A DNA stretch of 64,000 nucleotides from Eutreptiella sp. 'Long Island Sound 2002' (Eukaryota > Protista > Euglenida): positions 41,664,001 through 41,728,000 of the forward strand of contig OZ038379.1 in assembly GCA_964036045.1 (NCBI GenBank). Reading direction: 5' to 3'. The notes beneath the pieces were generated by a model, which had not been told where the DNA came from, did not search any database, and saw only the letters and a program-made list of their open reading frames with translations. The number at the start of each line of letters is the position of its first letter. The stretch's first letter is position 1. Shown here one piece after another: positions 31,275-57,925 of the stretch. Made by a program: the position numbers and the translations under genes.

Positions 31275-32870
31275 ATGAAACGCCCCGCCGCTTCCCCCTT
31301 TGCTCCCTCCTCAACCGGGAAGGACACTTCCCTCTTGTCTAAGGCACTACGGGAGTTGAGTGGGGCATCTAACCTCAAGGATGAGCGGGTGGGCCATTAT
31401 TTGGCCACGTGGGCGCTATCATGCCCCCTAGCACGGCGGCAATTCAACAATACCGTCCAATATGTCAACTCCGCCACTTCTAGCCATACCACGGGTGAGG
31501 CATGCAAGGCCGCCGTTGAGGCATACGCCGCCTCCTTTCTCCCCACCACCCGCCATGTGTGAACTAGTGCTCAACATGAGGGCACCCAAGTCCTCGTGGA
31601 GGACCCCCTTGGAGCTCTACACCCTCCGTAAGTTGGAGTATCACCGCACCGTCCCTAGTGGCCCCTACTCCCGTCCAATTTGTACCGAGCGGGCTTTCCC
31701 AGCCCGTTGGAAGGAGTTGGTCGCCCAGGTGCAATTGAATGACCCCGTTGCCACGGTGTTGCCCAAGGCCACCGGGATCTCATGGCCCTTCGCCTCATGG
31801 GTCACATACATCCTCTCCTGGCCGGGCTTGGTGCGGTCAATCAACCGCACCTTCCCGTTGACGTTCATCGTCCGGGGAGATGCCTACCCCGTGGCCGGGG
31901 GCAATTGGACCCAACTCACCATCTCCTTGGCCAACTTCGAGCGCTTGGCCCGTTGCGCGGCGGGCCTCTGGGTGTTGAGCATGGCCAATTGCGATGACAA
32001 GGCCATGGACACCCTTGGGACGTTGTGGAAGAGCAATTGGGAGGTACTCCTCTCACCTAGTGCCTTTTGCCTGTTCTAGTTTTGATCTAGTTGGCCTCGA
32101 ACACCGTTCGCTAGACGCTAGATTGGACTAGACTAGAACGAAATTAACCACCCCCCATGTCTCGTGTTTAGGTGATTCAAGATATCATCGACACGGGGCT
32201 GGTCCAATGCGGGGCCTCCACGGAGGAGGCGAAGGTGATCCTCGGGGGGGATCAACCGTGGACGCAAAGGGTGATCGGGGTGTCCACATGCCCCCAAGTG
32301 GGCTCCATGTTCAATGAGCGGATATGGAATGCCCAAGCGAAGACTTGGGAGGGTAGTGCTATCCCGCGGACCATGGAGGGTGATGACGCCAACTACACGG
32401 CTTTCCTCCTTGGGACGCCTTCCTTGCAAGCCGCCGGCTGCAGTACACATCGCATTTTGAAATTGCCACGTGCCTGGGTCGTCTTGTGCATTTTGCACTT
32501 GACAATGGCCATGGGCCGCTTGTTGGGGGAGTTTGTCGACTGGGAGGCTAGGTCGGTCACCCCTGCGCTCCGTCAAGACCTGCAAGTTATCCTGTCGGAG
32601 AGGCGTGCACGTTGGAGCGTTTATGGGTTGGCTTCCCCTGGACGGGGAAGAGACGGCCAATTCTTTTGACGCATGGCCGGATATTGCTAAGTGCCTCGGC
32701 ATTAGGCCGAGCACGGCCAAGTACAAGGCCATCGCGCACATGTGGGACCTGCTGCAGGCCCTCTATTGTACATATCAGGGCCCTAACCCATTGAATTGTG
32801 CTGCCCTGGGCCGCGATTTCCGGCACTACTGTACTGTCCAATCTGGACCTCTCGGTGTTGGAGGGTTTGG
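31275..32870 (+). pseudogene. Spliced Transib/RAG1-like DDE transposase (one intron, frameshifts near 31550 and 32640)
   Basis: FIVRGDAYP, ILGGDQPWTQRVIGV, VLCILHLTMAMGRLL and (D)GEETAN occur in the order of the RAG1/Transib D...D...LH motifs. ORF 31462 joins ORF 32172 in frame across a GT-AG intron (WE|VIQ). Confidence 0.58.
32044..32171 (+). other. 128-nt GT-AG intron with internal CTAG-rich inverted repeat
   Basis: GAG|GTACTCC...TGTTTAG|GTG, phase 0, restores the reading frame. Arms GTTCTAGT (32073) and ACTAGAAC (32132). A homolog lies at 38935-39029. Confidence 0.75.
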
Positions 32871-33194
32871 GTAGGTGGGGAGCGGGGAGGAGTGCGGGCG
32901 GCATGGACCCGCAGCGCAAGGGTTGGGTGAGGGTGCAGGACCGGGCGGGGGAGACCAGCAGCAACAGCAACAGCAGCACCAGCGGGGGGAGGACACCCCC
33001 CCCCCAAGGCCCCCAAACCCCCCCCCAAGCCCCCCAAGAAAAAAACGCCGCCACTTCGAGAGTAGCGACGAAGACCCCCCCCCCCCAAGCCAAGCAGAGC
33101 AAGCCCAAGGCCAAGGCCAAGCCCAAGCCCAAGGCCAAGCCCTAGGCCAAGGCCAAGGGTAAAGCCCCCCCCCCCAAAACCCCAAGGCCGCCCC

Positions 33195-33698
33195 TTGCAA
33201 GATAGGGGCCGGGACCCCTATGGGAATGTGCCGGGTTTTGGGGACACCCGGTATGTCCCTTGGAGGGAGGGGGGCAATGGGGGGACCGTCAGCCAAGTGA
33301 CGGTGTTGGGGGATTGGGATGAGGAGTTGGACCCGGGGGAGTGGTGGGTGGTGTCGCAGGGGTCCAATGGGGAGGGGGTGGGGGGGAAGAAGGGGAAGAA
33401 GGGGAAGAAGAGGAAGCAGGAGAAAGAGGGGGGCACCTTCCGGGTGCCGGGAGAGCTTCCCTTCCGCACCCGGGAGGAGGCGGAGGCCCACCTCCGGGAG
33501 GCCTTGGGGGCCGGGGACGAGGGGGACGACGGGGATCACGAGGGGGAGGAGGGTGGTGACAAGGGGGAGGGGGGTGACAAGGGGGGTGAGGTGGGGGGTG
33601 ACGAGGGGGGTGAGAAGGAAGGGGACACAGGGGGTAGGAAGGGGGGTGCCGGGAGCAAGGATGAGCCCCGGCAACCCCCCACCACGCAGGAAGGGTAA
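33195..33698 (+). CDS. Acidic/Gly-rich ORF of element B, unknown function
   Basis: RGRDPYGNVPGFGDTRYVP...W is homologous to RGKDPYGEIPYGGESRRVP...W at ~58930-59080, so the peptide is conserved between two copies. Confidence 0.4.
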   Translation: MQDRGRDPYGNVPGFGDTRYVPWREGGNGGTVSQVTVLGDWDEELDPGEWWVVSQGSNGEGVGGKKGKKGKKRKQEKEGGTFRVPGELPFRTREEAEAHLREALGAGDEGDDGDHEGEEGGDKGEGGDKGGEVGGDEGGEKEGDTGGRKGGAGSKDEPRQPPTTQEG

Positions 33699-33877
33699 CC
33701 TGCGTGTCGCGACTCGCGAATGGGGGCCTTCGGGGGCAAGGGGGCTAATCGGGCTAACCGGGCTAATCGGGCTAACCCACCACCAAGTGACACGGTGCCG
33801 GCCCGCCAAGAGACCTTCCAAGTGACCTATGGGGTGCGGTGGGGGGCTAACCGGGCTAACCGGGGGGTGGGGGGGGA

Positions 33878-33958
33878 GGAACCCGGCGCTCCGTGAGTCG
33901 GGTGCAGCATGGGTACCCTCTGATTGGCCACGGCTGGCCATGGTAGCCGGGGCAGCTT
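33878..33958. promoter_or_regulatory. Dispersed ~80-bp promoter-like module, copy 3 (inside element B)
   Basis: Homolog of 892-972, preceded by GGGCTAA(T/C)C 9-mers (33741-33778, 33844-33862). Confidence 0.45.
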
Positions 33959-36900
33959 CTCTTTGAGGAGTGGCGGAGCATCTATATATATTTTTCTAGC
34001 GGCGTTCTAGCGAACCGTTCTAGCGACGCTCGCTAGAACGTCGCTAGACCGCCGCTAGAACGAAAATTTTTGGACTCCAAAATCAGGTGAAAACAATGAA
34101 ATTGTGAAAAGTAAAAAGTATGGGCCCACGAGTATGGATAGGGTGGTCCAGGTTCGACACCTCATCCCCCCCCTCCTGCGGGGGGGGGGGGGGCATCCCC
34201 CTCTTTTTTCCTTCTAGCCGCTCTAGCCAGTTCTAGGCTAGAACGAGATTAGGTATTCTAGCGTGTGCCAAGGGTGGTAGCGCAAAGCTAGCAGAGCACC
34301 ACAAGACATGGGAGAGTAGAGCAGAGAAGGGCAATGTAGGGCGGAGTAGGGCAAGGCATGGCCGAGTAGGGAATGGCAGGACAGTGCTTGAGGGCCAAGC
34401 ACATACACAAACCCAAAACGCACCATTGCGTCGAAGCTTCCAAAACTCTCCGTGTCCAAGAAGACCATCCGCCTTTTGAAGAGGGCATTGAGGAACACCA
34501 CCGACATGACATCCCTATACATGCATACGTGCTACGGCGGGGTTGAAAAGTGCCATGTTGTCCAAAGTAGGATCCATGGTTCATTGTTTCGGCGGTATTC
34601 ACAAATACCGCGTTGTCTTTCTTGATTCGCCGAAAGAAACGAGCCATGGCTCCTTGTTTCATATCAATCTGCAAACAACACGTTTTGTTTCTGGGTTTGG
34701 CCCAAATAATCTGCCTTGGCTCGTTCTTACGGCACAACTTCTTGTGGATTAGCCACATGTAGCCTCGTTGGTAGGTCTAAGAGTGCGATTACGCCGTTTA
34801 ATGTCTGCATGGCCACCAAGGCTCAGTACGTTCTCTGATATGTGGGTGTGTTTGTGCTCTTCACAGTACGTTAATTCTAGGTTCGGCCACACGAATGGGC
34901 CATGGATCAATCATGTTCCCGCTTTCAGCTTTCCAACGATTGTGTACATCATGCCACCGCACTATGGTTTTGGTTTACAATCATGTAGTGTTGCTGCGGT
35001 GTTTGGCCTGCATGTAATGATCTGCCACTATCAAAAATATGAGTGCCCACATCGTTAAAATGAAAACAGAAAAGGAAATAATCACGGTACAGGGATTCAG
35101 ACCTGCTGAAAAAATATTTTCTCTTTGCACAACCATGCATTTGTGAGGCATCAAGGGGAACGGGTATATCAACCTCGAGCGAGGGGGGTACAAGTGAGTT
35201 TACAAATGTTTACAAGTTTACAAGTGAGTTTAGTTTGGAGGGGGAGGCCGGGGGGGGGGGCAAAAAAAAGCATGTCCCCGAAAGTTTGCTTTCCAAGATT
35301 ACTCTCTTTTTATGCAGTGTGACCAAAACAAAGAAAAGGTGGTGTAAATTCACGAAATCTTTTGTCGCGGAATGGGAAACCAAGGTCAATCAGAAAGTTG
35401 CACATCAAAGATTTTGGACAGCATGCACCCATTGTATGCATTTTTAGCGTTTTTTTTGTCTTTACTTTTGTAGTGCCCTTTTGACATAGATGACATCACA
35501 AAAGAAATCAATGTTGTTATTGTTTTTCGATGGTGATGTATGCTATCTCAACAATATGTCACCAACACGTGCATTCATGGTATACATACATAAGAGCAGC
35601 TTCTGTCCGGCATGTACAATAGGTGGTCTACACAACATAAGCGGGCGTGCATTGCAGCAGGGCTATCTAAGTGGGGTAGGAGCAGCGGAGCAACACACCA
35701 AGGAGCCATCCACGTATCCCCAGGCATAGGCACACACGTTGCAGCTGGCAGCATGGAGAAAGATGTGGGGTACACAAGGTCTTCAAGGCCGTTAGCGTGG
35801 GAGGACACCAGATGGGGCAACACGCCTTGGCCTAAAGGGAGGGCTATTTTTCGGGGATGTGCAACATGTACAGTTGCCACTGTGCTCTGCTTGGGCACCG
35901 GAAGCGCCTTGGGCCTTGCAACCTTTTGAGACCAAACATCGCATAAGCCAAGTTGCTTTGGGTGTAGTACACGTGCCACCATGGGGGATAAAGATGCCAC
36001 CACTCGGCTGCACCATGTGAGCGCCGAGATGTGGGTTGGGGAGGGCTCTACACCACATAGGCCCAGAACCAATGAAAGGCACCGTTTGTGGGATTGTGGC
36101 CTACCAACATCGCGAGCTCCAATCCAAGGTGGCACGGTCCGTGGCTTATGAGGGGTGGCTGGCAACGACGTGTCGTTGGCCAATTTTTTTATTTACGCAG
36201 GGACATGCTTTCCTGAGGGCTATTTCTCATATACCATGTGTGAGCGGATTGTCTTTGTGCCCAAGGCTACAAAGTTGGTCTCACAGCGCGCACCACGTTG
36301 GAATGATAGGCAAATCGACAATAATCTCAATGGGCAATTTGTAGAGGTGGTTGAGGCAAGGCTGTGTTGGCCGCCCAGCAAACCCGATGTCAACCATATG
36401 CAAGTGGTTCCGTACATAGCCCAGGGCGTATCATAGCGTTTAAACTTGTAGGCTTATCCCAAGTTACTAGTTCTGCCGTGTGCGTATGGCACACGTAGTG
36501 CATTGTGAAGGCTGTGCTGCAACACGCGCGCTCCCAACCCTCGGTGGCTTTCCCTACATAAGCAATGTATGGTGTCTATAGTAGAGTGCAGGGTGGAGGG
36601 AACAGCGTGGTGAGGCTTGAACAATGGGCGAAAGTACCCCGGGCCTCCAGGAGCTGGGAAAAACTATCCACGTCTCCTGTGCTCGCATGGTAGAGGCCTG
36701 AACCCTGTATGCCTACTCTCAACCCGCTTCACGTTACCTCCGTGATGACATGTTCAATTATGCAGCCACTAGGTGCACAAATAACTCACCCCAAGTTCGG
36801 CATACCGCCAATATTTCACCATTTTATGCACCTCTTCGCTGTCTATTGTCTGTTTTGCCCAATGACTTAGCTGGTCTCTCTACAATGCTCTGATTGTATT

Positions 36901-38444
36901 TGTCATTCTCAACTTATGCTCTTTACCTTTAGCATCCTACTTCTTAGCTTGTTCCTTCCTCCCCGTTGCTTACCTTTGTAGTCTCTTGTTGGCCCTCGAG
37001 GCGTTCCATGCTTTTGACCCTTTGCCACACTTTGTTGCCAGGGGATGTGTTGGGTGTTGTTGCCACTCACCCTTTATGATCTTTTGCGCCTATGGACACC
37101 TTGTACGTGAAGCCCTTACGAGCTCCATGGTGGCTTGTCACATTCAACAAACCACGTAGCCCGTTTACCACTGAGCGTTGTTTGGGAGCCCTCTGAGCAT
37201 TGGATGTTGTATCGATTGCACTACGCACGAGGTGTGTGTATTGCGTATAATGAACGTTTCATTCCGCACTCTATCGGCGGCTTCCTCCCACGCTTCAGAA
37301 TCCACTGCCACACCAACACTCGCGTGCCGCCGCAGCGTTGAATTCAGGAAACATGCTGTAAATGGATTTTGTGTCCACACAAGCATTCGGAACAAAGGGG
37401 ACAGTATACACATGATTGGTGTTGTGTTCCACCAAAATTGTTGTTTGCGGAATTTTCCAAAAGTGCCCAAAATCTTGACAGCTAGAAACCGACTGCCAAG
37501 GCTCAACTACCACAAAGTCAAAATCGGACTCAGTCCTTGTAAAGGGCATTGAAAAATTGTTCAACTATTATTTGCAATCTTGAGAAATTAAAATCATTCT
37601 TTTGTCTGGCGAAGGGTACAATTTGGCACACTTCTCGCAAGTCCGGAATGTTGGTCCTCAAGCTACCACAGTAGCGCTCACAGGTCCAATGGCGTAGGTT
37701 CAACAATCATTTTGCAAGCAAGCTCTAAGGGTCCTCGAAAAAAATCGGCTTCTCCGAACCCCATGGCCTTGGGGTTCATTGTGCGCACGCATGGAGCCAT
37801 AAATGTACCGTGCACATCGGATATCTCCATTCCTCCATTCACAGAAGTGGGGTGGTATGCAATTTGGCCTAGTTCTCTTAGGCCACGCTAACTACCCGCC
37901 CCTTACGACCCAAACATGTGCACTTTGTGGCCTTTTCTGTGTCTTGTTTTTGTGCCTATGTTTTCCATGTGTGGCCTGTACTGTAATAGGTGGTGATGAA
38001 TAGCTGTACATTTATTGCGTGTACTATGCATACACACTTTGACACTCAAATTCACTGTCTCTATTTGCCAATTTAGCAAGACCTGGGCGAAATTTCCCCT
38101 AGCCTCCCCGGATAGCAAAAAAGGTATACATATTTTGATGTCTTGATGACCCTGGGCAAAATTTCGCCCAACTCTGCCTGTTTTGCAAAATATATAGCTT
38201 AAAAACACCAATCAGTGATCCTGGCCGAAATTTCATCCAGCCCCCCCGTGTTGCTTATTTCCTTGTGCTGTGCATGATATGTTGCCCTCTGCCTACCTAT
38301 CGCTTGGGCCTACCAATCGATAAAGTTGAACCTGGGCGAAATTTCTTCCAGCTTGCCTTGACACCCTTTACCTACAGGGTGGTACCTCTGTTGGGTTCTG
38401 TTCACGGGCTCTTAGGGTTGCTTCTGCCAATGTGGCTATGAGAC

Positions 38445-38951
38445 ATGATTGATGTGCGCTTTCTTCAAACAGCCGTGGGGGGTACTCGCGTTCGTACCCC
38501 GAAGGCTCTAATGCGGGTGGCATTGAACAAAGGGAGAACACTCCCGCTGCTGCAGCTGGCACTGGATTTTCGTCACAATAGAAAGACTAGACGTAATGTT
38601 GGGCATGTGCGGGCTGCCTTCAGTTCTCGTCGTGTACCAAGATGGTTGTTGGTCCTGCAGAAGCAAGTTTTCTCACTCTATAACATTGTGCGAGTGCCGA
38701 CATACCCCCGTGCTGAGAGAGCCACTGGAGCCTCGTATCGTGGTACAATGACCCAGTCCATCCGTCGTAAGCTGGCAATGGAAGAGGAATGCACTATCAA
38801 TGCCCCTACTATCTCGGCCCAGGCCAGTGTTCAAGCTCCCCACCTGTGGGATTCACTTGAGAGACATCAAATTACCCTGTGGTTCGACAATTACCGTCGC
38901 TACATCAATGGGGTCGACCCTCATAGCCTCAGAGATACTCCTCTCACCTAG
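38445..38951 (+). pseudogene. N-terminal fragment of the same transposase family
   Basis: HQITLWFDNYRRYINGVDP matches VLWIDNYNKWRY at ~10700. The ORF ends inside the intron-like sequence starting at 38935. Confidence 0.55.
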
Positions 38952-39029
38952 TGCCTTCCACTCGTTCTAGTTTGGTTCTAGTTAGCCTCGGACACCGCTC
39001 GCTAGAAGGTAGGCTAGGCTAGACTAGAA

Positions 39030-39365
39030 CTTGGGGTGCACTATTCGCAAGGTTGCCGGGAGTGCTTTGCGCGCGAGGAACGCTTTTTCGTGTTTTTTCT
39101 TGCACTTCTTCCGTGACCCCTTGTTTTGCATCCTGCCCCTGTCCTTTGACACATTTTTACGGCTGAAGCGCCGTAAAATGTTTGTCCGTGCAGGCGGAAA
39201 CAACACGGCAGCAGAATGAAATACAAGACCTGAAACAGCTATGTTGTGTCTGTGCGTGGGTTAATGGCACGGGACATGTACAAAGGTGGTGCAAGGCATC
39301 AGGCACCTATGAATTGAAAGAATGAGAAGAAAAGGGTCAAAAGGGTCAAAATGGTCAATGGTTAT
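39030..39365 (+). mobile_element. Nested left end of a family-A element
   Basis: Direct copy of 7781-8118, beginning with the intact TIR CTTGGGGTGCACTATTCGCAAGGTTGCCGG. No matching right end was found downstream. Confidence 0.9.
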
Positions 39366-40301
39366 AGATTGCGTCAACAGCAGGCTGCCCAATGAATTTG
39401 ACAAGCTTGCCCAACCCTGCCCCACGCCTGGATACAGTGACCTTCAGACACCAAGAGACAGGTAAAAATAGAGGCCTACAATAAGGTATAACGGATACAG
39501 TTGAAACGTTGAACGCAGCACGTTGCCTTCATCAATTGTAATACCAATTTCAGGCAACATGTTCTGAGTATGGGTGAGCAGGGGGTCCTCTGGATCCTCC
39601 GCAATATGCTCTAGTAAGAGTGCCGTCTGCTCACTGGTTGTTGACACACTACTGCTTGTGGTCTGCACTTGATGAAGCCCTGCTACCTTTCTCCGTATGG
39701 GCAAAGGAGTGTCTCTTCTAACCTCAAAGCCTTCAAACTCTCTGGTCCATGTAGGCAGGGGGTGATTTTTGGCTTCCTTTTCCTTGCGATGTTGCATGGG
39801 AGCCGTGAGGATGTGCTGGCCCCCAATGGCATACCAAAACCCAGCTGTACATGAGGTGAGAGGTAGTACAGAGTAAAATCAAATGGCACCGAAGATCGAG
39901 TAAAATCGAAACAAGATTGGGTAGAACATACGCACACCGGGTACCAACAGTAAATCATCAATACAATCAGGAGGTGGTGCCCGTAATAAATCATCAGAGC
40001 GGGCCTGGACTCGCTCGGGGTTCAGCGCACGAACTTGGCCTTCAGAGCGATCTCTATCAATCAGGATGTGATCCCATCGGACACGAATGCATTTTGTGGA
40101 AGTGAGGTAATCTGCCAGATTGATGTCTCCCTTTTCTTTCGGTTTGGGCTTTGGCTTCGGTTTGGCGGCCAGTTTGGGCTGTGGTTCTGCTGTAGGGGCT
40201 TCAACAGCAGAAGTTCCCTCAGTTCCACTGAGATGATCTTCATCATTGGCCAGGTTTTCGGGCGGTGTACCAACATTTTGACCGATTTCCATAGAAGACA
40301 T
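39366..40301 (-). pseudogene. ParB/Srx-like gene of element C, 5' half (inside the inverted block)
   Basis: From ATG 40301: IRVRWDHILIDRDRSEGQVRALNPERVQ. A GT-AG intron at 39845-39937 gives VP-A-GFWYAIGGQHILTA, then RRDTPLPIRRKVAG and RRGAGLGKLV up to ~39366. Confidence 0.62.
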
Positions 40302-41076
40302 TGCTTGGAAGGTAACAAAATAGCAGGTGCACAGTGCAGACATGGTGATATCCAGGTGCTGAGACACAGATATTAGCCAAATCAGATCAAATTTATAGAA
40401 CCAAGGTTCAAAAACACGAAATGTGTCCAGCAGGGATAAGACAGTGCTGAAGGATGCCAAATTTACAGTGACAGGAAAGCTGGGCGAAATCTCGCCCAGC
40501 TTTGGTAGGAACAAATAACAACAGGCTGAAAATCATGAAAGTCGGGGGCCTGGGCGAAATTTCGCCCAGTCGGAAGCACAATAGCAAATAAAGCAGGCAA
40601 ATCAGTCCCAACTCTGTGTACTCCGTCCCAACTCCTCTTCCTCATCCAGCACTTTCAGGGCCGAGTCACTGCGCACCTCTTCTGGGCCCTCACCGCCACC
40701 ATCAACATAATTGAAATCATCTAGCACCGGTACAGCAGCAGGCATGGCGTGGAGGGCGGGGGGTTTTGGGGGGGGGGGTCTGGGAAGGGGGGGGGGGTGC
40801 TGGGGGGACGACCACCGGCACACCGCGCGCTGCGGGTTTGACGGCTGGTTTTGCAGCTGGTTTTGGAGGTGTGTTGATACTCTGGTAGTGTGCACTGCGT
40901 TGCCTCTGATCAACATTGGAGCGCTTCTGACTATATGCATTTAGAAAATCCTCAACACCATTGGGTATTTTGGTCTTGGCAATGAGACACCGTAGGCTAT
41001 GCCGAACAAGGCTCAAAAATTGCTGATTCGTAACCCTTGTACGCGACAACACTCCCGGAAATTGCATGCGGGGGGC

Positions 41077-42500
41077 TTAATCAAGACGCTTGACCACATA
41101 CTTATCCTGTTGTAGGACAGCAATGGGGAACCAAGCATGTGAGATGTTCTGAATGAACAAATGCACGTGCTTTGTGTACTTGTCCACGGACTTCTGCGTC
41201 AGGACACCCTGGCATCTTTTCTCTCCTGGAAGTCTGGGGGGGAGAGTTAAAAAAATATCAGTTGTCTGCTGCACCGACTTCGCATTACCAACCTCCCTTG
41301 ACCGCATGAGTAGGCGACTAAGCATTGCTTCGCCGTACTCCTCAGAAAACAGGCAACCAAGTGCCCGGGTGTGCCAGTCGGACCAGAAAAGCAGTGCTAC
41401 AGTATTGGTACGCAGGTATACAGTGCTCAGCCACTTTTCAAAAGGTATGATATTCATCATCAAGACAGTACTCATTTCAATGCTTTCTTTTGCAGCTACA
41501 ATGGAATTCAGAGAGCGACCGTTCCAGTTACATTCACGCACAAGAACCCCTAGTGCCAGAAGTGCTGGGCAGTACAAATACAACAGGGCCTTCAGGGCTA
41601 ACAGACATTTCAGACCTAGTCTTTAAATATCAGACAACTCAGCAAGATTACCCATAAGGACCAGGGTAGTACCATCAAGCCGTGCTTTGTTAGCAGCTGT
41701 AGCCAGGAACAAACCAACAATGGTTTTTTCCACATGACGAAGTTTGACTTTCATGGGCACCACAGCTCCAGCCTTCGGGTCCCAACCCTGCTCAAGAAAT
41801 TTAATAATAGGGGCAAATGCCTTGTAGGTTATTTCCACAGAATACTTATACGGGTGCCAGACACCGTAAAGCAAGGGGTGTCCCAACAGGAACTGGTCTA
41901 CGTGCCAGGGGGCATAGCTTGCTCCGAACGACATTTTCGGGAGTGCGTAAAAGATCTTCATGTCAATCAGAAATGGCACAGTCCGTCTCGTCTTTACGTG
42001 CAAGCATTCCAGCCCCTTGACAGACTCCAGTAACTCAACATGACTTCCGCATTTCAGGTGTGATAACAGAAAGGGCATTCAGTTGAGGGATACCACAACA
42101 TTGCCAGCATAGTCCAGAGGTGCACGAACCCAAGTCTGCAATATAGGCCCATCTGGGACGTTACTTCTTTGCAACAGCAATTCAACACAGCGAACTAGGT
42201 AGTCGACAACCCCGGGTATACATTGTGCAACAGCATCCAAACCGGACAGACCGTGGTACTGGGGCAACTCAGTAGTGTGCAACACACCGCATGCATGTGT
42301 AGCCGCAGCCTAAGGCGGGGTGTGTTTGTCCTAAAAGTCCTTGGTTTGCGCGTGTGGGCTGTTTTCCCCCAAGCAGAAACGTTCCCCCGCACGTTTCTAC
42401 TTTTTACCGCCGCCTCCTGGATCAACTCCCCATGGCAATCCTTGCAGGGGAGTTGAGGAGGGGTTTCCATCCACAACACGGATTGTCACGTGACAATCAT
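41077..42500 (-). pseudogene. DDE-transposase-like gene within element C
   Basis: VRAPLD, PFLIDMKIFY, PLLYGVWHPYKY, YCPALLALGVLVR and FSEEYGEAMLSRL are colinear with the element A gene at 9487-10859. Confidence 0.68.
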
Positions 42501-42637
42501 CAACCAGCAAATTCATCGACAAAACAGCTCCGCATCCCGAGCCAAATAAATCACTTTGGTAGACCGCGGGAACTAAGAGGTTTCTCATTTAACCTCTCGA
42601 ACGACATGCGGGAACACAGCAGGTTCCAGCCCTTGGG

Positions 42638-44360
42638 ATGCCGAAGCGAGATGTTGAACCGGCGCTAGGGGTTTTCAAAGAGTGCGAAGGATTGATGCCA
42701 GACAGACTGTCAGGCATTGTCCTCTACATGTCGGGTACTAAAAGCTCAGTACTGGGTATCAAACATGAAATAAAGTTGGCCAGAGTTGAGCAGTTGTGGA
42801 GCCGGCATGTGCTCCTTCCGGATGCAGTCACAGAGGGGTTTGTGCACGAGTCCAAGGGTATGCCGACTTTTTCTGCATTATTTTGCACTGTCAGTGGTAG
42901 TTATTTCCACCTGTTTGTTTCGTTGTTGTCGCTGAGCTGGGCTAAATTTCGCCTAGGTCCCTCGATTCTCGTTCATAAGCATACCATTTTTGAACTGTCT
43001 CATTTGTGTCCTGTGTATACCCTCTGCAGCAAATTTGGGTACTGTGACCATGTGCAAAGAACAATGTCGTATTATGGCCCATATCCGGGTCCTGTATGGC
43101 TGCTGGGTGTGGAGTACCGAGTCACCTTGGCCACCGTGGGCTTCTGTTGTCAAGGCAGTTTTTTGGACCTCCAACCTTGACCAAGGGTTACGTGACAGGC
43201 TTCGCAAGCCCCGTGTGACACCAAATATTGAAAAGGCTCACGGTGGGCATATGAGTCTTAAGTTGGGTGACACCATTATTGAGACAGACTCAGGGAAAGT
43301 TCTAAAGGAGGAGGGTAGAGTTGAGCAACTCCCTTTGTGGGCAGGCTGCCCTGTTCCCAGCTTTATTAGTGCACTGCCATTTGTTTGCATCCTGATTGAG
43401 GTCCCACGTGTGTGGACGTTGGCACTGCACAATTTTGTGGCACAATTTGTGTTGAATGGTATTTTGGTGGCAGTCACCGGTGAGACTGATGATGTTCGGG
43501 CCTGTGTTGGCAACCTCAAAGCTGCCTGTGCTGAGGAATTTTTCCATGCTGATGTCTGTGTGTACAACCTGTCCAAACCATCAGCACTGTTCAGCACTGG
43601 ACAGACTGCTCTTGCATTGTGTAGTCTGCATCAATTTTCGGCACGCCTACCTCAATCCCTCTCTTATATACAGGGCCCACTTACGACTGCCATTCGTGTC
43701 GAAGTGTTGTGTTATTTGCTGTATGCTTTGGATTTGATTCAGCAGAATAGTACATGGGTAATGGTCTGCACACAGCAGCCAAATTTTTCTGCATCCCTGT
43801 CCATTCAGAGCATGTTTCCTGTCAACATTGCTATTGCATACCTGTCTGAGGAGAAGTCTATTCCTAAGTCATTTGTCACTGATTTGAGGGCTGCTGTGTC
43901 GAAGTCCGATACTGTGGCACCAATCCAGTGGGACCGAGTGTATGAAGACCTTGCCCATGGGTTTCCAGTAGATTGTACGGGAAGGAGGTATGTAGAGCAA
44001 GAAGAGGAGGCCACCCAACCAGAGGAAGAGGACGGTGAATCCCAGAAGCCCCCCCCCCCCCCCCCGCAAAAGGCAACCGGCAAGCAAGCGGACGGCACCC
44101 CGGCCAAGGCTAAAAAATCAAAGGCTGGAGCAAGCTCCTCACAGCAGAGCCCCAAGCCTGGTGCAAAGCCTCCACCCAACAAGGCGCTGGGCACGTTTGC
44201 AGCCCATTTCACACCGTCCCAGCAGACACAGAATGGACGTGGTGCCACTGGTAGCGCTAACAGTGAGATGTCTGGTGACCAGGCAGGACAGGCAAATTGT
44301 GGGCAGTTTCCTGGTAAGGGTGCCAAACCAAAGGCACCTGGCCTGAGGAAGCGGCGATAG
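42638..44360 (+). pseudogene. 3' half of the ParB-like gene, ending in an acidic/Pro-Lys-rich tail
   Basis: ORFs 42638-43180 and 42990-44360. DVEPALGVFKECEGL weakly aligns with YEPIKAATFRDYSSGL downstream of RRFAGLG in element A. The last ~375 nt are shared with 5047-5414. Confidence 0.5.
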
Positions 44361-47229
44361 AGTGACAGTGGTGTGTGCTGTGACTGCTGTGTTGTATGTT
44401 TTCCCTGTTACACGTCACAATGGGGTTGTGCGCTGTCTCTGCTGATACCATCGACGTCTTGAGGACTGTTTTTTGGTGTTTTACTAAAGCTGGAAGAAAT
44501 TTCGCCCAGGTTCGGGTATTCCACACAGGGTTGCCGCACCCTGTGTGTGCCCAAAAAACTGTCAATTGACAGTCACTCAAATTCATGCATCATAATCAAG
44601 GTCTCTACTTGCCATTAATGAGACCTCTGGGCGAAATTTAGTCCAGCTTTGCAAAAATGTAAAAACGAACCGTGTTGATACATTTGTGTGTAATACAGAA
44701 AGGTTTGTTGTATTGCTGAAACGTGCATTCTTCCTCTGCTTTTCCAGTATGCATACATGCTTATTGTGTTTTAACAACTACGATGTGGTTACATGACAAT
44801 GGCATTTTAGGTAAATAGCGATACTCATTTTTTCCTCTCAAGAGGGAAGGGCTCCCCTAGGGGGAAAATTCATACCTTGTTTTTTTTGGGGGGGGGTTAC
44901 AGGATGGCCCCGTGGAGCCCAGCCTGTGGGTAGGGGGGTGGGAAGTTAGCGTGGCCTAAGGTTCTAACGCAAATGTTCAGGGCAGCAAGGCCGTAAGCGT
45001 TCGTGGCGCCAGTGCCGCAAAGCGGCGGGGGTAGTAGAGGGGAAGCAGTTCCGTGTCAAGAAGACTTGAACCCCCCCCCCCCCCCAACGTGACAGGAACA
45101 GAGGCTCCACCCGCTTTTCTTGTCCTTATTTGACAACATGAAAGGAACAACATGACCAAATGGCATGACGGTATGACTGTAATACCCAAGTTGAGGTAGG
45201 CTACATTATTTTCCGGGTTGTCTGTACGGTCCGGCATACCTTCAAGAATGGAGCATTTTGAGTAGGCATGGGGAAACCGCATCCGCCACTAGGTAAAGGA
45301 ACACACTAGGGAGGGGGAAGGCAATGGGTCGGCGGAAGGGGTGGTGCGTTGCCGTGCTGTCTGAGTAGTAGACAGGCATCTCCCGTCGGTGCTACGTTCA
45401 AGAGGCTCTGACAAAATTCTTCTTTCTGGCGGTGACATTTGGAGAATCGTTGATAGGAAGAAGTTCATGCAATCGTTCATTGGAGCAAGTTTATGAATGG
45501 GAATTGGTGGGGTTTGCTTATCTTCAATTGAACGCCTGCCTCAATTGATTTTCTCGTCACCTTGTGGTGGTCATGAGTTTCCGTTCGCTAAGCTGGTCGA
45601 AAATTAATACATATGACGGGCGGGGGGGGGGGTTCCTATGAGGGAAAATCCGCTCAACGCAAATACCAAGGAGTGGCCGGCTCCATCTCTCTTTGGACCG
45701 ACATGACCCCTAGGAAACCACCGGGGTGTTCAAACATGCTCCGTTCAAAATGCTTGCAATTTTCAGCATCGTGGCTTGGTTGTTGTTCCCAGAGGCCTCC
45801 CCTAAGTTCCTAGGCAAGGAGCTTTTGCGGAATCGGAAGGGGACACCCCTCTCCTGTGCCGCTCTTGGTAGGTCGGGCACTAGGGTGTTCATGGTGCTGT
45901 GCCGCCACCCCAACCATACCACAACGCCAAGCTCAAGGACCAAACATTAGGTCCACCAACGGCACAAAGTTGAGAGACACGGGAGCGGTGCAACGTCTTT
46001 ACATCGTGCCGGTAGGTGATTTAATGTGCTACTGGGGACGTATGATTTTTGCTAGCACAGTGAACACTCATTATATTAAGTTAGGTAAACTTGATTGGTG
46101 TGGTTGGTATTGTCTCCTATCTACACCAAACAAATAATCTAGTGTTAGCACACAGAGGGGGGAGGCAAACTCTGCTGGTGGACGGATGTCACTAGCTCTC
46201 TTTTGTTTCGCCGAAACTCTTTTGGGGTTGGAATTTCATTTGAAATACTTGATATCTCTTCGGCCGAATGGTACCTTGGTCCACTGCATCCATGAGGCTA
46301 TTCGAACGTGCCCATGGTTGCCATCCTTGACGCACTGTTTTTTGCCGCCAAAAATTATATTTGTGGGGTTACAACATAATGAAACAACCCAGGTCGATGT
46401 TGAAATGGAATCCGTTCTTTGTCAACAAAAACCAGCGCCCTTGCTTTGGTTCACTTTGTGCCGCGAAGGTAGTTTATTAACAATCGTCTTCCTCGTCATA
46501 TGCACAAAAATTGGTATATTGGAGGCTGGTTCTTTGGTCCAGAGTGAGGAGTCCCGCAATTTTGGTACTAGTGATGGGAGCTTTTGTGATGCCCTCAGGT
46601 TTGCAAGCAAAGCTGCTTCAGGGCTCCTAGGCAACGGTACACCGGCTGCTTGTGGATTGGGTTTAGCCGTGCTTTTCAGCCTAAGCTTAGGATATGGCCG
46701 TTTGGCCCCTTCTACTTGCAACTGCGAATCTTGTGGAATCTTTGCATCTCGGAGAGTTAGGGGTTGGGTCACGGATGTGGTAGCAAAGGGATTGTCGTTT
46801 GTGGGTCATGGTCCAAACATGGTGTGGCTCTTTTTGCCACTTCTAGTGAAAAATTTTGGGACAGTGTGTGTCCGCACCATTTTTATTGCAAGAACTCTCA
46901 TAGCAGTGTTAGTAGGCATCTCGTAGCCATGCCGGGAAGGCCCAGTTCCGCAACCTCTCTCTTGCAAGTAGCCCCACACGGGGCACCGAGGTGCAGCCCC
47001 TGACCCAACCCCCCAACCCCCTGCCGCCCTCTTTGGGGGCCATTTTGTTTGAGAGGTCCCCACCATCGTACAAGGCAGTATGGAGGTATTCGTTGACGTT
47101 GAGAATGCCCGAACATTTTGGTCCCGGGTATGAATGGGCCGGGAGAACGGTCACTCCATGTGTTAATATTGAAAGTGCTCATTTTCTTTCTCGCCATTTC
47201 CCCTCGAACTGCAACAAGGTATAAATCGG

Positions 47230-47560
47230 GCATCCACGTGTGACATTGTCTCCATATGGATCTTTCCCTGTTTGGGGATATGCCTCAACAATCCATGCAC
47301 CTCAGCGCATGGTCCCTTGGGTGTGGGCCGCTACAACCATCATGACAGTGGTAAGGAGGGTGAGTGGACACCTTGGTTGTTGTATGTTGACCCTTCACGC
47401 CACCGCTTCCCTAACACCTTGTTCACAGCAAGGTTTTTGAGAAGCAACATTAGTGGAGATCATTATGAGACGATCCGCAAGGTTGCTTTTGGTTTGGGTG
47501 GACCGGCACTTGGCTACAAGTGGTGCACCACCGTGGGTGAAAGGAGGGTTTTTTTTGTCC
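47230..47560 (-). pseudogene. Possible retroviral-type (rve) integrase remnant
   Basis: LLLKNLAVNKV...GSTYNN...PTPKGPCAEVHGLLR loosely fits PLKNK...D.GSEF.N...P...G.AE. Many stops. Confidence 0.28.
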
Positions 47561-47899
47561 TAGGTGGTTCTTCTCCTCCTCCTCCGCCCCCCCCCCTTTC
47601 CAGAGGAGGGCGCAGTTGTGTGCCTTACAGGTCCCCTTGACTACCGCGAAAATGCGCTGCATCTGGGAACCTTTCCGGGCAGGAAAGTGGGCAAGGAACC
47701 GCCGGGCGCACCCAAAGACCCCTCCAACTGTTGGGTGCGCCGCTGGAAGCGCTCCACTGGAAACCCCCCCCCCTCCTAGGACACTCGGTGGGTGCGGGCT
47801 GCCATTCTACGTCTTCTCGGTTGAGAAATGTTTTGTTCCTAGTGTTTGTTGCTGTAGGAAACAACGTGTACCACTGCCCGCTTGCTTGATTTAAAATGG

Positions 47900-48070
47900 G
47901 TTCAAAAGTGTTGGAACCCCAGCGGAACCCCTTCCAGCACTTCGCTGGAAGGGGGCTTCAGCGCTAGAAGGGGGAGGTTCCAGCGGTTGAAGGGGGTGCC
48001 AGCGGGGGTGCCAGCAAGGGTTCCAACGCTGGAAGGGGGTCCCAGCAGGGTTCTAGCAGGGGTTTCCAAC
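47900..48070. repeat. GC-rich short-repeat cluster (GCTGGAA-GGGGG-TTCCAGC family)
   Basis: Multiple GGAAGGGGG/GGTTCCAGC variants. Related clusters lie at 49640-49770 and 51520-51610, and loosely (inverted) at 27590-27690. Confidence 0.7.
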
Positions 48071-48265
48071 ACGTGTTCTACCTCCACATGCGCTACTCTC
48101 CGCTCACGTTTCTCACACTATTGTGCCATCTTTTCACCTTGATCATGGACCGCTGAAATTGTCCGGTTCTTGGATCATCGCTTGACAAGGCTAATGCCGT
48201 TGTTGGGACTCGTGGATATGCAGCCCGTGTTGGTTGTGAACTCGAAGCCCTGACATCTCAAACCA

Positions 48266-49327
48266 ATGGTGCTGCAGATGTCCATCATGCATGATCGTAC
48301 CCCTCGTGCGGTGAGGGATTTCTTCATCGATATTATGGACAAAAACCCCCTCGTTCCCATTTTTCTATTCTCCCTTCATCCCAAAGAGGCGGAGGATTTG
48401 CACCTGAGCATCACCTCTAGGCTCCTCACCGACTCCATAGGCACCGTGAAGCTGCATGCGGCGCACAACCAGACCGGTGCCGTCCTCTTTACCTGGAGGC
48501 GCCCCGGAAGCAAGCATTTGGCCAAGGACAACTATTTACCCCCCCAACCCACAACTCACACACTCCGCTTCCTCGCCCTCAAAGACGCGCACATACATAT
48601 TCCCATCGACTCGTTGCCCATGTGCAGCCAGTTACACGGGAGACCTGACGACTGCTATGGCCTTACCACCCCCACCATGATGTCCACTACCGACGAGGAG
48701 CCCTTTGTTCGTTGTCCTGTGTGCCACACCCTTCCATTGATTGGCAGTAACGAGGAGGTCTTCTATGGCCCTGCACTTGGCACAGCCACCAATGCGAATC
48801 CCAATGCCAGCGCCAGCTTTGGGCTTTGCCGTTACCGGGGTATCTTTGCCGACTCCCCGGCCCACAACGCCACCGAGGACGAGTGCATCACCATTACGGG
48901 TCACAAGTGGGGGTCCGTCTGCAACGACAATGTGCCGGCTCCAGGTCGTCAAGGAGACAACCCTGGCCGAACTGCCTGCTACAACCGCTTGGGACTACCA
49001 CTACTGGATGACGAGGGGACGGAGTTGCCCGCCTTGGATGCCTTTGCGAAGGAAGCACACTTTGAGTTGCAAAAAGTGAATGAGTTTGAGGATGCCGTGG
49101 TTGTCCGGGGCGGTTTTATCCGCGCAACCAATGACGGGCGGCAACAATGGAACCGGGGTGACACCTTGATACACAAGACTCAAAGCAAAGCCCTCTCAAT
49201 ATTTGGCCCTGCAACGTGTTTATTCTCGCAGATGCCTCTTGCGGTTGATATGTGCCCATGTCCCATGAGGATGTGCCGAAGCCCTCGTACGAATACCCGC
49301 TGGACATGGTCTTCACATCGGAGTTGA
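48266..49327 (+). CDS. 353-aa ORF of unknown function (weak SET-like pattern), possibly continuing by frameshift into a C2H2-like motif at ~49540-49600
   Basis: Long stop-free ORF of ordinary amino-acid composition with GLCRYRGIF, GHKWGSVCND and FIRATND. CFACQKVPLGPRAMQHLPQQH lies downstream. Confidence 0.4.
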   Translation: MVLQMSIMHDRTPRAVRDFFIDIMDKNPLVPIFLFSLHPKEAEDLHLSITSRLLTDSIGTVKLHAAHNQTGAVLFTWRRPGSKHLAKDNYLPPQPTTHTLRFLALKDAHIHIPIDSLPMCSQLHGRPDDCYGLTTPTMMSTTDEEPFVRCPVCHTLPLIGSNEEVFYGPALGTATNANPNASASFGLCRYRGIFADSPAHNATEDECITITGHKWGSVCNDNVPAPGRQGDNPGRTACYNRLGLPLLDDEGTELPALDAFAKEAHFELQKVNEFEDAVVVRGGFIRATNDGRQQWNRGDTLIHKTQSKALSIFGPATCLFSQMPLAVDMCPCPMRMCRSPRTNTRWTWSSHRS

Positions 49328-53635: not shown

Positions 53636-53939
53636 CTCTCATTGCCACTCCTTTAAATGGTATTCGCCTCTATCCTTTCACAGCCACCACTGTAAATGCT
53701 ATGCGCCTCCCATGAAGAGCTGCGGATGGGCGCACTACAAGAGTCCTCTCCTTGACACTACTTTACATATTGTACGCCTGCAAGAAAAATTGCGGACGGT
53801 CGCGCCAAGCTACTCCTGTGGATTGCCATTAGTTTAAATGTTCTTTGCCTCTAATGGAAAAATTGGGGATAGTCGCATCACAGGAGTCCTCCAATTGCGA
53901 CTACTTTATATGTTGTGCCCCTCTACTGCAAAACTGCGG
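53636..53939 (-). repeat. Inverted ~4-unit copy of the 71-bp satellite
   Basis: Reverse complement specifically of 55112-55419, sharing the diagnostic variants GGTGGCTGTGAAAGGAT and GGCGCGACCGTCCGCA. Confidence 0.88.
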
Positions 53940-54032
53940 CATGGAAAACATAGACACAAAAAGAAGACACAGAAAAGGCGACAAAGTGCACATGTTTGGG
54001 TCGTAACGGGCGGGTAGTTAGCGTGGCCTAAG
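53940..54032 (-). mobile_element. Isolated left end of a family-C element
   Basis: Reverse complement of 37877-37969, including the TIR. Confidence 0.88.
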
Positions 54033-57000: not shown

Positions 57001-57925
57001 TTACACTGAGAGGATAGAGGCGCACGGCATTTACAGTTGTGGCAATGAGCGGACTCTTGTGTCGCGACCATTCGTAGTATTTCATTAGAGGCACACAACA
57101 TTTAAAGTAGTGGCAATCGGAGGACTCTTATGGTGGGACCATCCACAGCTCTTCATTAAAGGCGCACATCATTTAAATTAGTGGCAATGAGAGCACTCTT
57201 GTGGCGCCACCATCCGCAATTTTTCATTAGAGGTGCACAACATTCAAAGTAGTGGCAATGAGAGGACTCTTGTGGTGCGCTCACCCGCAGTTTTCCATTA
57301 GAGGCCACGACATTTATACTAGGCGCAACGAGAGGAGTCTTGTTGTGAGACCATGCGTAGTTTTGATTCAGAGGGACACAGTATGTAAAGTAGTGGCAAT
57401 CAGAGGACTCTTGTGGTGCAACTATCCGCAGTATTACATTAGAGGCAAACAACATTAGGAGTATTGGCAATGAGATGACTGTTGTAGTGCGACTGCCTGC
57501 GGTTTTGCATTGGAGGCGTGCAATATTTAAAGTAGTGGCAATGAGAGGACTCTGCTGGTGCGACCATCCGCAGCATTTATTAGAGGCGCACATCATTTAA
57601 AAAAGTGGCAAAGAGAGGACTCTTGTGGTGCGACCGTCCGCAACATTTCATTAGAGGCGCACATCATTTAAAGTAGTGGCAATGAGAGGGCTCCTGTTGT
57701 GCGACCATCCGTTTTTTTGCATTAGAGGCGCATAGCATTTAAAGTAGTGGCAATGAGAGGACTCTACTGGTGCGACCGTCCGCAGTATTTCATTAGAGGC
57801 GCACATCATTTAAAGTAGTGGCAATGAGAGGACTCCTGTGGTGCGACCATCCGCAATTTTTCATTACAGGGGCATGGCATTTAAAGTAGTGGCAACGTGA
57901 CGACTCTTGTGGTGCGACCTTCCGC
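54050..57925 (+). repeat. 71-bp satellite array (~55 diverged monomers)
   Basis: Consensus GTGGCAATGAGAGGACTCTTGTGGTGCGACCATCCGCAATTTTTCATTAGAGGCGCACAACATTTAAAGTA. Unit starts at 57535, 57605, 57676, 57747, 57818 and 57889. Confidence 0.95.

Follow-up and report, generated by a model that had tools for sequence, protein, structure and literature searches.

A predicted ParB/Srx-fold fusion gene and lineage-specific palindromes in a group of compact transposons from Eutreptiella sp.

The whole 64,000-nucleotide (nt) stretch of Eutreptiella sp. DNA analysed here, called the window, contains two loci, A and C, which carry broken copies of the same gene. The gene encodes an N-terminal half of predicted ParB/Srx fold, which appears to be fused to a large C-terminal domain; it is flanked by a second gene, X, and by terminal inverted repeats (TIRs), and each lineage of the family has palindromes of its own. 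In our judgement, A and C are probably decayed members of one group of eukaryotic cut-and-paste transposons, characterised by short GT-AG introns, TIRs starting with CTTRGG, 5-bp target duplications and two genes, in which the ParB-fold fusion protein would serve as a self-targeting accessory factor. The ParB-fold and helical part of the protein would dimerise on the 16–22-bp palindromes of its own element, which recur about every 70 bp near the ends and are also found between the genes and in the introns of the fusion gene. Binding would bring the C-terminal domain to the DNA or chromatin of the element, where the protein may modify or protect the element, or may act on promoters in the way of KorB on plasmid RK2. 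That the protein binds DNA or uses a nucleotide, and what biological effect it has, is what we infer from these features. Such a self-targeting role was suggested earlier for Plavaka-associated gene 3 (PAG3), which is carried by transposons of red algae (Petroll et al. 2025, bioRxiv 10.1101/2025.02.11.637652; Curr Biol 2025). The analysis covered six exon pieces of A and C and their homologues, which came from ENA assemblies, as open reading frame (ORF) fragments on megabase contigs, and from metagenome contigs (L002 and L003); the comparison loci are designated L001–L007.

The fold was predicted with AlphaFold2 for P0063, an intronless homologue, from an alignment of 37 rows; the window copies are broken and are not the modelled sequence. 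The model has a mean predicted local distance difference test score (pLDDT) of 76.8, with values mostly between 85 and 95 over residues ~61–190 and a dip to 68 at residues 111–120. In a Foldseek comparison with the PDB, the top 18 matches were ParB, Noc or KorB proteins only, followed by sulfiredoxin, SbnI, PadC and a few hypothetical proteins of ParB/Srx fold. The best match was 7bnr_A (expectation value, E, 3.6e-5), and ParB proteins of Myxococcus and Caulobacter bound to CTP or CDP were among the matches. Foldseek probabilities were 1.0 for the top matches and 0.85–1.00, mostly 0.95–1.00, for nearly all. Phage and giant-virus ParB/Srx proteins were the only matches in the viral library BFVD. 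The N-domain alone superposes at a root-mean-square deviation (rmsd) of 2.2–5 Å over ~100 residues. Residues 176–293 of the model are helical, and ~220–260 columns align with ParB, Noc and KorB at an rmsd of 12–15 Å. The structure comparisons, in which the top matches from both libraries are all ParB/Srx proteins, thus support the ParB/Srx fold that a preliminary description of the window had proposed for the N-terminal half of the protein. Profile searches gave no counterpart to this result. Neither Pfam, which includes ParBc, nor NCBIfam, which includes ParB models, matched the pieces or the full homologues at E values up to 1–10; Pfam was negative for the six exon pieces, ten large window ORFs and the database homologues, and NCBIfam yielded low-complexity matches only. 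Single-sequence and profile searches of the PDB sequences with the ParB-fold family were empty.

Two motifs of the N-terminal half can be placed on the ParB/Srx scheme. GQVR in C corresponds to the Q-P-R box of ParB, and the loop that follows reads (I/L)(G/S/N/R)GQH plus V, S, L, Q, I or T in every family member, or GGHH in L006. The replacement of the arginine usual after GGQH (by N in A and by I in C) had been noticed before, and rightly, but as a change in these two copies. Arginine is absent from this position in all family members aligned, so its loss is a family-wide trait and not a product of the decay of A and C. The arginine patch GERRxR of ParB, Noc and KorB was not found in the family, where GGQH and a non-arginine residue take its place, and CTP-clamp behaviour therefore cannot be assumed. 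A likeness to DndB/DGQHR proteins, which had also been suggested, did not hold, as the aspartate and the arginine of the full motif are missing and neither Pfam nor NCBIfam provides a match. To judge from the sequences, membership in the CTPase clamps, the DndB proteins or the sulfiredoxins fails on the defining residues of each.

Three-frame translation recovered at both loci the four motifs that had been listed for A and C: DYLTSTKCIRVRWDHILIDRDRSEGQVR in C and QYIISTATDVSVDDIDFDTERMFGQCR in A, AIGGQHILTA and CIGGQHNTKA, DTPLPI and DTPLHI, and RRGAGLGKLV and RRQNAGGLG. In the minus-strand ORF of C, a Lys/Pro-rich start is followed by DYLTSTK..VRWDHILIDRDRSEGQVR...LLLVP; beyond a stretch interrupted by a stop lie GFWYAIGGQHILTA...DTPLPIRRKVAGLHQ and then, in a different frame, VSRRGAGLGKLVKFIGQPAVDAIY. 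In A, the motifs recur in this series on the plus strand, spread over shifting frames. Pairwise BLASTP between A and C pieces was not significant (E 1.2 and 3.0), and a self-blastn of the window revealed no DNA similarity between the two ParB-fold genes, so that the original observation was a pattern and not yet a statistic. Database searches enlarged the family. The exon-1 ORF retrieved 40 close relatives (57–89% identity) in a word-indexed search, all of them ORF fragments on ENA megabase contigs, and exon 2, compared exhaustively with 1.84 billion cluster representatives by phmmer, matched 42 proteins only, among them the distant, longer members P0063 (313 residues, 36% identity), P0070, P0077, P0076 and P0074. 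A second word-indexed search, with P0063, returned P0063 itself and nothing else. A family profile was built from the database homologues without A, trimmed to the columns of P0063 and run against 2037 six-frame pieces of the window. The A pieces rank third and fourth, straight after two C pieces; 12110–12535 matches profile positions 9–47 (E 0.0015) and 12696–12992 matches positions 70–119 (E 0.032), on the same strand and in colinear order. With the untrimmed profile, the E values of the A pieces were 0.032 and 2.4. In addition, an intron in phase 1 interrupts both A and C at an identical site directly before the GGQH strand, and both loci are flanked by a homologue of gene X (E 1.8e-11) and by a homologue of the downstream domain (E 0.02). 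Because profile ranks, intron and flanking coding regions concur, these sequence comparisons are taken to establish the homology of the two ParB-fold genes, A being very divergent. The earlier claims that A and C encode alignable peptides and have little DNA similarity both agree with this outcome.

The preliminary description treated the ParB-fold gene as a second gene in its own right. On the simplest reading of the sequences, it is instead the 5' half of a single four-exon gene encoding ~800 residues, as conserved splice sites of phase 1 would connect it, with the frame kept, to the downstream 456-residue ORF in three lineages. In C, exon 1 (39932–40301, minus strand) encodes the Lys/Pro-rich N-terminus, the first ParB/Srx strands and GQVR, and ends in phase 1 at the donor C/GTATGT (here and below, the slash in a splice site marks the junction). 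The donor is kept as GTAYGT in four copies; GTATGT in L006 was read by eye from the sequence. GT-AG introns had been reported correctly, but the donor of intron 1 had been set at 39937, where L001, L004 and L005 have no GT; the conserved donor lies 6 nt downstream, and exon 1 ends at 39932. Intron 1 (39845–39931, minus strand, 87 nt, GT..AG, phase 1) has an in-frame stop in the C copy. Its interior diverges between lineages while the exons are conserved, and it is missing from P0063 in L002, where 9 nt separate the flanking peptides. In L006 and L007, the acceptor of intron 1 is mutated and reads ACATCC where other proteins of family 2 imply ACAGCC (L006:8652–9482, with identical coordinates in L007). 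Exon 2 (39522–39844, minus strand; profile E 7.8e-54) encodes the GGQH strand and a helix, DTPL and RRxxAGLHQ, and its 3' edge is approximate (donor AAC/GTGCTG).

Exon 3 of C is in two parts. The first (39364–39441, minus strand, VTVSRRGAGLGKLVKFIGQPAVDAIY) is cut after a Tyr codon by an inversion breakpoint at 39364; in the intact L001, exon 3 continues directly into GMEKRDVEPALGVFKECEGL. The second (42635–42857, plus strand) matches exon 3 of L006 (E 1.2e-21) and ends in phase 1 with K plus G/GTATGC. The breakpoint separates the Tyr codon of exon 3 precisely from the Gly codon that follows. The minus-strand part of the gene (40301 to 39364) is therefore continued from 42635 on the plus strand, and the frame does not end at 39366, as had been thought. 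Intron 3 (42858–43029, plus strand, 172 nt) contains a palindrome copy at 42940–42953, and its donor and acceptor have compatible phases in the window, L005 and L006. Exon 4 (43030–44360, plus strand) is the 456-residue ORF formerly regarded as a separate partner. It encodes a conserved globular domain of ~330 residues and a Lys/Pro/Ala-rich tail ending in GLRKRR, and this basic C-terminal tail looks like a nuclear localisation signal.

The joining of the two halves is supported by several features. At every locus seen (A, C and L001–L007), ParB-fold ORFs are followed by an adjacent same-strand ORF of 420–460 residues. Exon 4 and the ORF downstream of P0063 in L002 are homologous (E 1e-38), and 42 database homologues were found. 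In the window, L005 and L006, exon 3 ends with K/R plus G/GTATG in phase 1, and a YAG/C acceptor just upstream of the downstream ORF keeps the frame. The residues between this acceptor and the Met, A-(N/T)-L-G-T-(V/I)..., are conserved, and L005 has Thr in place of Met. The same layout occurs in A, with CACAG/AG and then ..SLEMCTRLAEVMAQ versus ..GTVTMCKEQCRIMAH, and exon 3 of L002 lies beyond the stop of P0063. The gene product would thus consist of the ParB/Srx domain and its helices, a conserved linker encoded by exon 3, the C-terminal globular domain and the basic tail.

The C-terminal domain was modelled with a pLDDT of 41 from a 12-row alignment. Foldseek searches with this weak model returned S-adenosylmethionine (SAM)-dependent methyltransferases, led by M1.HpyAVI and CcrM, at E values of ~1e-3 and low TM-scores. 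Sequence profiles and PDB sequences gave nothing for the domain, the position of the catalytic motif (D/N/S)PP(Y/F/W) reads WPP(W/L), and no His-x-Asp...His pattern occurs among the conserved columns. The resemblance to methyltransferases is thus a hint only. Lys/Pro/Ala-rich stretches such as KPKPKP and PPPPKP, which occur in X, in the ParB-fold N-terminus and in the C-terminal tail (L006:6101–8311; window 40605–41067, 40116–40301 and 44000–44357), cause spurious cross-matches in profile searches.

TIRs and 5-bp target duplications were found in five copies belonging to three lineages, namely A, C, L004, L006 and L007, and copies occupy different loci of one assembly. The TIRs of L004 are those of C, and its duplication is CCGGT. 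L006 and L007 represent a third, young lineage; they are 97.9% identical over 6.5 kb, have TIRs beginning with CTTAGGCGTCACAAG... and are flanked by the duplications AGGCA and CATCC. The ORF for the C-terminal domain of this lineage belongs to a 90% cluster with 175 members. By these sequence criteria, A, C and their relatives are real multi-copy DNA transposons, and the genes do reside in TIR-bounded eukaryotic elements, as had been claimed; neither a lack of the ParB/Srx fold in structure searches nor a predominance of host-gene homologues outside such elements was found. The ratio of nonsynonymous to synonymous substitution rates (dN/dS), which had been suggested as a check, was calculated between copies. 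It is 0.8–1.5 between close copies, which indicates neutral decay, and 0.19 between C and the divergent L005 (dS 0.89), which indicates that the gene was under purifying selection while the lineages diversified.

The intact L006 element (6.5 kb) holds two genes only between its TIRs: gene X, a 736-residue ORF, and then the ParB-fold gene. Neither X nor the fusion gene of L006 has a match to a P-loop family, and a ParA-type ATPase partner is absent. The X ORF is intact or nearly so in L006 (736 residues) and L007 (696 residues). In C, the N-terminal part of X (38442–38948, plus strand) corresponds to residues 5–163 of the L006 protein (E 2.4e-27) and the remainder (40605–42309, minus strand) to residues ~172–736, in pieces with E values from 4e-11 to 1e-53. 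This remainder is spread over several frames, which marks a pseudogene, and its opposite strand results from the inversion. The X gene of A (9889–11328, minus strand) is degenerate and is oriented divergently from the ParB-fold gene; its pieces are 9889–10347 (X residues 278–424, the match given above) and 10648–11328 (E 0.004, colinear). No X was detected at three loci: the 4-kb copy L005 and the metagenome contigs L002 and L003. A transposase plus a ParB-like accessory module had been envisaged for these elements. A second coding region does accompany the ParB-fold gene, but the intact 736-residue X matches no known family in Pfam, NCBIfam or the PDB sequences, and that X is the transposase is a reasonable guess. 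Assignment of X to the Mutator-like DDE enzymes, based on WFDN and L(I/V)D(V/M)...GxWHxYK, could not be demonstrated, since the His residues are not kept in A and one conserved Asp is Ala in L006. To our knowledge, the combination of a 5-bp duplication with CTTRGG termini fits no described superfamily.

Each lineage has its own 16–22-bp palindrome, which occupies subterminal, intergenic and intronic positions. The C-type palindrome, CTGGGCGAAATTTCGCCCAG, is best preserved at 40550–40569; other copies are at 38086, 38155, 38335, 40483, 42940, 44493 and 44630, a partial C-type element elsewhere in the window has copies at 5548 and 5617, and an eleventh copy of the core (GAAATTTC) starts at 38227. 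Pairs of copies are ~69–70 bp apart. Allowing up to two mismatches, GGCGAAATTTCGCC occurs 10 times in the window versus 0.18 expected, a count reached in none of 100 shuffles, and all matches lie inside C or the partial C-type copy (5046–6064). The A-type palindrome (13609–13637), with a perfect 20-mer, TTACGGCGCTAGCGCCGTAA, at 13614–13633, occupies a position that is homologous to intron 3. Its motif, TTTACGGC-N4-GCCGTAAA, recurs eight times, at 7904, 8965, 9973, 11269, 12681, 15326, 15351 and 15765, and another copy of the palindrome lies at 12648, in intron 1. Six A-type matches were counted versus 0.01 expected, and family D1 comprises nine copies. The A palindrome is unrelated to that of C and occupies equivalent places, including intron 1 and the junction before exon 4.

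The pattern extends to other lineages. In the 21-kb L006 locus, 11 perfect copies of CTGGCCGAAATTTCGGCCAG, 18–22 bp long, lie in the element and none in the 15 kb of flanks. Five are located between the left TIR and X at 69–71-bp spacing, the region between the two genes has two, introns 2 and 3 contain one each and the remaining two lie past the last exon, so that clusters occur near both ends (5729–6028 and 11309–11561). L002 has nine perfect copies of GACCCGAAATTTCGGGTC, mostly in introns, and L005 has three degenerate core copies and no perfect palindrome; palindromes therefore persist at two loci where X is undetected, which links them with the ParB-fold gene and not with X. Between lineages, the outer arms change together while the core is fixed (CTGGGCG..CGCCCAG, CTGGCCG..CGGCCAG and GACCCG..CGGGTC). 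Such a pattern, with sites of cognate type close to the gene and strongly enriched inside the elements, is expected of sites read by a dimeric protein that the element encodes, and the ParB-fold protein would be the obvious candidate.

Several points weigh against a self-targeting ParB-fold factor. No sequence profile from Pfam, NCBIfam or the PDB sequences recognises the ParB domain, and the fold call depends on one AlphaFold2 model, obtained from a shallow alignment of 37 rows, of a homologue with 36% identity to C. The GERRxR patch is replaced by GGQH and a non-arginine residue, and at an rmsd of 12–15 Å the ~250-column Foldseek alignments leave the assignment of a helix-turn-helix insecure. 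The splicing is deduced from the sequence only, and the binding to the palindromes is a prediction; such subterminal repeats might just as well be recognised by X. No reliable fold was obtained for the C-terminal domain, and its methyltransferase-like matches disagree with the weak 2-oxoglutarate (2OG) oxygenase call made for PAG3. Finally, the family has multiplied although the intron-1 acceptor is mutated in the young copies L006 and L007 and GGQH is changed to GGHH in L006, which suggests that the protein is supplied in trans or is dispensable.

The palindrome arrays also lend themselves to an account in which the ParB-fold protein belongs to the transposition machinery, pairing or bending the ends by means of the arrays, as TnpA of En/Spm or other architectural cofactors do, or, in the extreme case, cleaving the DNA in place of X, since some ParB/Srx proteins nick DNA. 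The concentration of the L006 arrays near both ends, the retention of TIRs and ParB-fold gene in the 4-kb L005 where X is undetected, and the lack of a recognisable transposase domain in X are all consistent with such a role. We nevertheless consider it unlikely, as palindromes also occur in introns and between genes, distant from the ends; L005 represents one old copy only, and L006 and L007, both sampled from a family that multiplies, carry X ORFs of 736 and 696 residues; no nuclease residues were identified in the ParB-fold protein; and no eukaryotic transposase with the ParB/Srx fold is known. A further step along the same line would make the elements an undescribed superfamily of eukaryotic DNA transposons, with CTTRGG termini, 5-bp duplications and X and the fusion protein as their only conserved proteins, in which the ParB-fold protein and the arrays are integral to mobility and may pair the ends, or partition or retain excised DNA in the manner of ParB-parS. 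The carriers do appear unclassified, and we regard this larger claim as rather improbable.

Comparable odds, in our view quite low, attach to a KorB-like transcriptional regulator that binds palindromic operators and sets the expression of X and of its own gene, with a non-enzymatic C-terminal domain. KorB and Noc are among the structural matches, and in L006 and C palindromes precede both X and the ParB-fold gene and also occur past the last exon of the latter, as such a regulator would have it. A conserved 330-residue C-terminal domain with long-range homology (E 1e-38 between the window and L002) is, however, unexpected in a pure repressor, and the arginine patch by which KorB and ParB clamp CTP is absent. 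It is very improbable indeed that the resemblance is meaningless, either because the fold call is an artefact or because A and C are unrelated and have their motifs in common by chance. The non-significant pairwise BLASTP, the lack of Pfam and NCBIfam matches and the marginal score of A with the first profile would fit that view, but with the curated profile both A pieces come next after C, in colinear order, A and C have a common intron position and phase and common flanking homologues of X and of the C-terminal domain, and the top structural matches in two libraries are all ParB/Srx proteins. A self-targeting accessory factor, possibly with regulation of promoters among its tasks, is the account that we favour.

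Element C spans 37877–44960 and has imperfect TIRs of ~26 nt (CTTAGGCCACGCTAACT...), the right TIR, reverse-complemented, ending at 44960; the target duplication GTTCT (5 bp) is found at 37872–37876 and 44961–44965. Its ends were set by comparison with L001, L004 and L005, all from one assembly, and by direct reading. Element A (7781–15927, 8.15 kb) belongs to a distant lineage and has 34-nt TIRs that are 97% complementary (CTTGGGGTGCACTATTCGCAAGG...) and the 5-bp duplication GCAAG at 7776–7780 and 15928–15932. Its fusion pseudogene (12146–14386, plus strand) consists of exon 1 (to 12609), intron 1 (12610–12777, GT..AG, phase 1), a piece of exon 2 with IGGQHN and DTPL (12778–12992), further pieces at 12982–13167 and 13233–13546, an acceptor at 13662–13663 and an exon-4-like region from 13664 to at least 14386. 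A 25-bp tandem duplication (12505–12554) shifts the frame, and further frame changes follow. In C, an A-type fragment is nested in two halves. The first (39030–39364, plus strand) starts with an A-type TIR and is 89.9% identical to 7781–8116; the second (42286–42634, minus strand), at the other inversion junction, is 85% identical to 8124–8467 reversed. The inverted halves indicate that the fragment was inserted into gene X and that 39364–42634 was then inverted. From these lesions, both window copies are judged to be dead and non-functional.

The same point in X (the 8026/8055 junction of L001) holds foreign DNA in two copies, the window and L004. The window insert (38929–39364 and 42286–42634) comprises the A-type end fragment and a 100-bp piece, and an inversion followed; that of L004 (L004:2599–8027) is 5.4 kb long and is related to window 31062–34274. 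The common junction may reflect an older insertion that both copies share and that was rearranged later, or else a site that is preferred as a target.

Other remnants of the group are present in the window. The partial C-type copy (5046–6064, plus strand) retains the 3' end of exon 4, two palindromes and a right TIR ending at 6064, and has a small internal inversion relative to C (5585–5730 versus 44675–44529). A third, very degenerate remnant of the fusion gene (59144–60593, plus strand) consists of an exon-3-like part (59144–59428, E 3.5e-7) and an exon-4-like part (59918–60593, E 0.09 to 0.67); no ParB-domain piece or TIR was detected there. A solo left C-type TIR of 93 bp (53940–54032, minus strand), 95.7% identical to 37877–37969, lies at the edge of a 3.9-kb satellite (54065–57925) made of ~55 copies of 71-bp units that are 70–77% alike, with higher-order periods of 142 and 213 bp; inverted satellite units occur at 53636–53939. 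An origin of this satellite from the ~70-bp palindrome arrays was rejected, as its consensus contains no palindrome and the solo TIR simply represents an insertion into it. At 1100–2267 there are tandem repeats of 135 and 269 bp with up to 94% matches, which are unrelated to the elements. Large ORFs in 31062–34274 and 46186–49327 (for instance 32826–33941, 371 residues, and 48266–49327, 353 residues) have no Pfam match, and the 31–34-kb region is repeated in L004. Searches of the window for tRNA and Rfam RNA gave no matches, and no host gene was recognised. Judged from its sequence content, the window appears to consist mostly of nested repeats.

Few transposons encode a protein directed at their own DNA, and those that do bear on how elements escape or shape host silencing. 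The idea of a transposon-borne, ParB-like self-targeting protein was published in 2025 for PAG3. With its two genes packed into 6.5 kb, the present family is unusually compact; one genome contains many young copies of it, and it offers a way to study the function of a ParB fold that lacks the CTP-binding arginines. Since its protein lineages are each paired with different palindromes, the recognition of palindromes by ParB-fold proteins is directly testable. The arginine-less loop, the lineage-specific palindromes and the compactness make the family a good experimental system.

Among known systems, sulfiredoxin and DndB have the same fold, and GGQH resembles FGGCHR of the former and DGQHR of the latter. 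In contrast to sulfiredoxin, the family has Gln (His in L006) in place of the catalytic Cys, no arginine and no peroxiredoxin context; in contrast to DndB, it has neither the Asp nor the Arg of DGQHR, no dnd operon and no profile match. The likeness to ParB, Noc and KorB is closer in architecture, with an N-terminal ParB/Srx fold followed by a helical region, a Q-x-R motif (GQVR versus QPR) and palindromes of the 16-bp class near the gene, comparable to parS and to KorB operators. Nonetheless, GERRxR gives way to GGQH and a non-arginine residue, ParA is absent, and the protein, which lacks a sequence-level match, is encoded by a eukaryotic, intron-containing gene and carries a large C-terminal domain.

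Proteins that combine a ParB domain with a DNA methyltransferase are known from algal transposons. For instance, Sola1-1_Ec32 of Ectocarpus is reported to encode a ParB domain and an N6/N4 DNA methyltransferase in one protein (PMC12477816, with reference to both Iyer, Abhiman and Aravind 2011 and Petroll et al.). The role proposed here, to bind and modify the DNA of the protein's own element, would be similar, and the top Foldseek matches of our weak C-terminal model, M1.HpyAVI and CcrM, are beta-class DNA adenine methyltransferases. In contrast to those proteins, in which PF01555 is readily detected, no such match is seen in the Eutreptiella family, the catalytic motif position reads WPP(W/L), and the carrier superfamily differs.

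The closest parallel is PAG3, which occurs in red-algal Plavaka, MuDR, TLH and unclassified repeats. PAG3 has no InterPro domain; HHpred detects a ParB-like N-terminal part (7BNR_B, E 0.29) and, in the C-terminal domain, a putative 2OG oxygenase (E 0.016). Inverted repeats in tandem arrays adjoin the gene, and the protein has been proposed to bind and modify its own element (bioRxiv 10.1101/2025.02.11.637652). A table note in the same work describes "two predicted proteins ... likely single protein". PAG3 carriers include Plavaka/EnSpm elements (2-bp duplication), MuDR elements (9 bp), TLH repeats and Fanzor elements, of 11–52 kb, as well as SAT-1N_CCri (3.6 kb) and REP-2_CCri (4.8 kb) (bioRxiv 10.1101/2025.02.11.637652). 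The carriers described here differ in their size of 4–8 kb, 5-bp duplications, CTTRGG termini and orphan gene X; PAG1, PAG2 or a recognisable transposase were not seen in them, and the weak C-terminal model resembles SAM methyltransferases instead of 2OG oxygenases. In both cases, however, a transposon-borne accessory gene without InterPro or Pfam match encodes an N-terminal ParB-like domain that is only remotely detectable, with 7BNR as the best match (7bnr_A by Foldseek here, 7BNR_B by HHpred for PAG3), and a second, C-terminal domain. Inverted-repeat arrays adjoin both genes, gene models split one probable protein in two, and PAG3, too, is found in short repeats of unclassified kind. Given the same architecture and the same best structural match, the Eutreptiella family may, by analogy, be filed as a new member of the PAG3-like kind.

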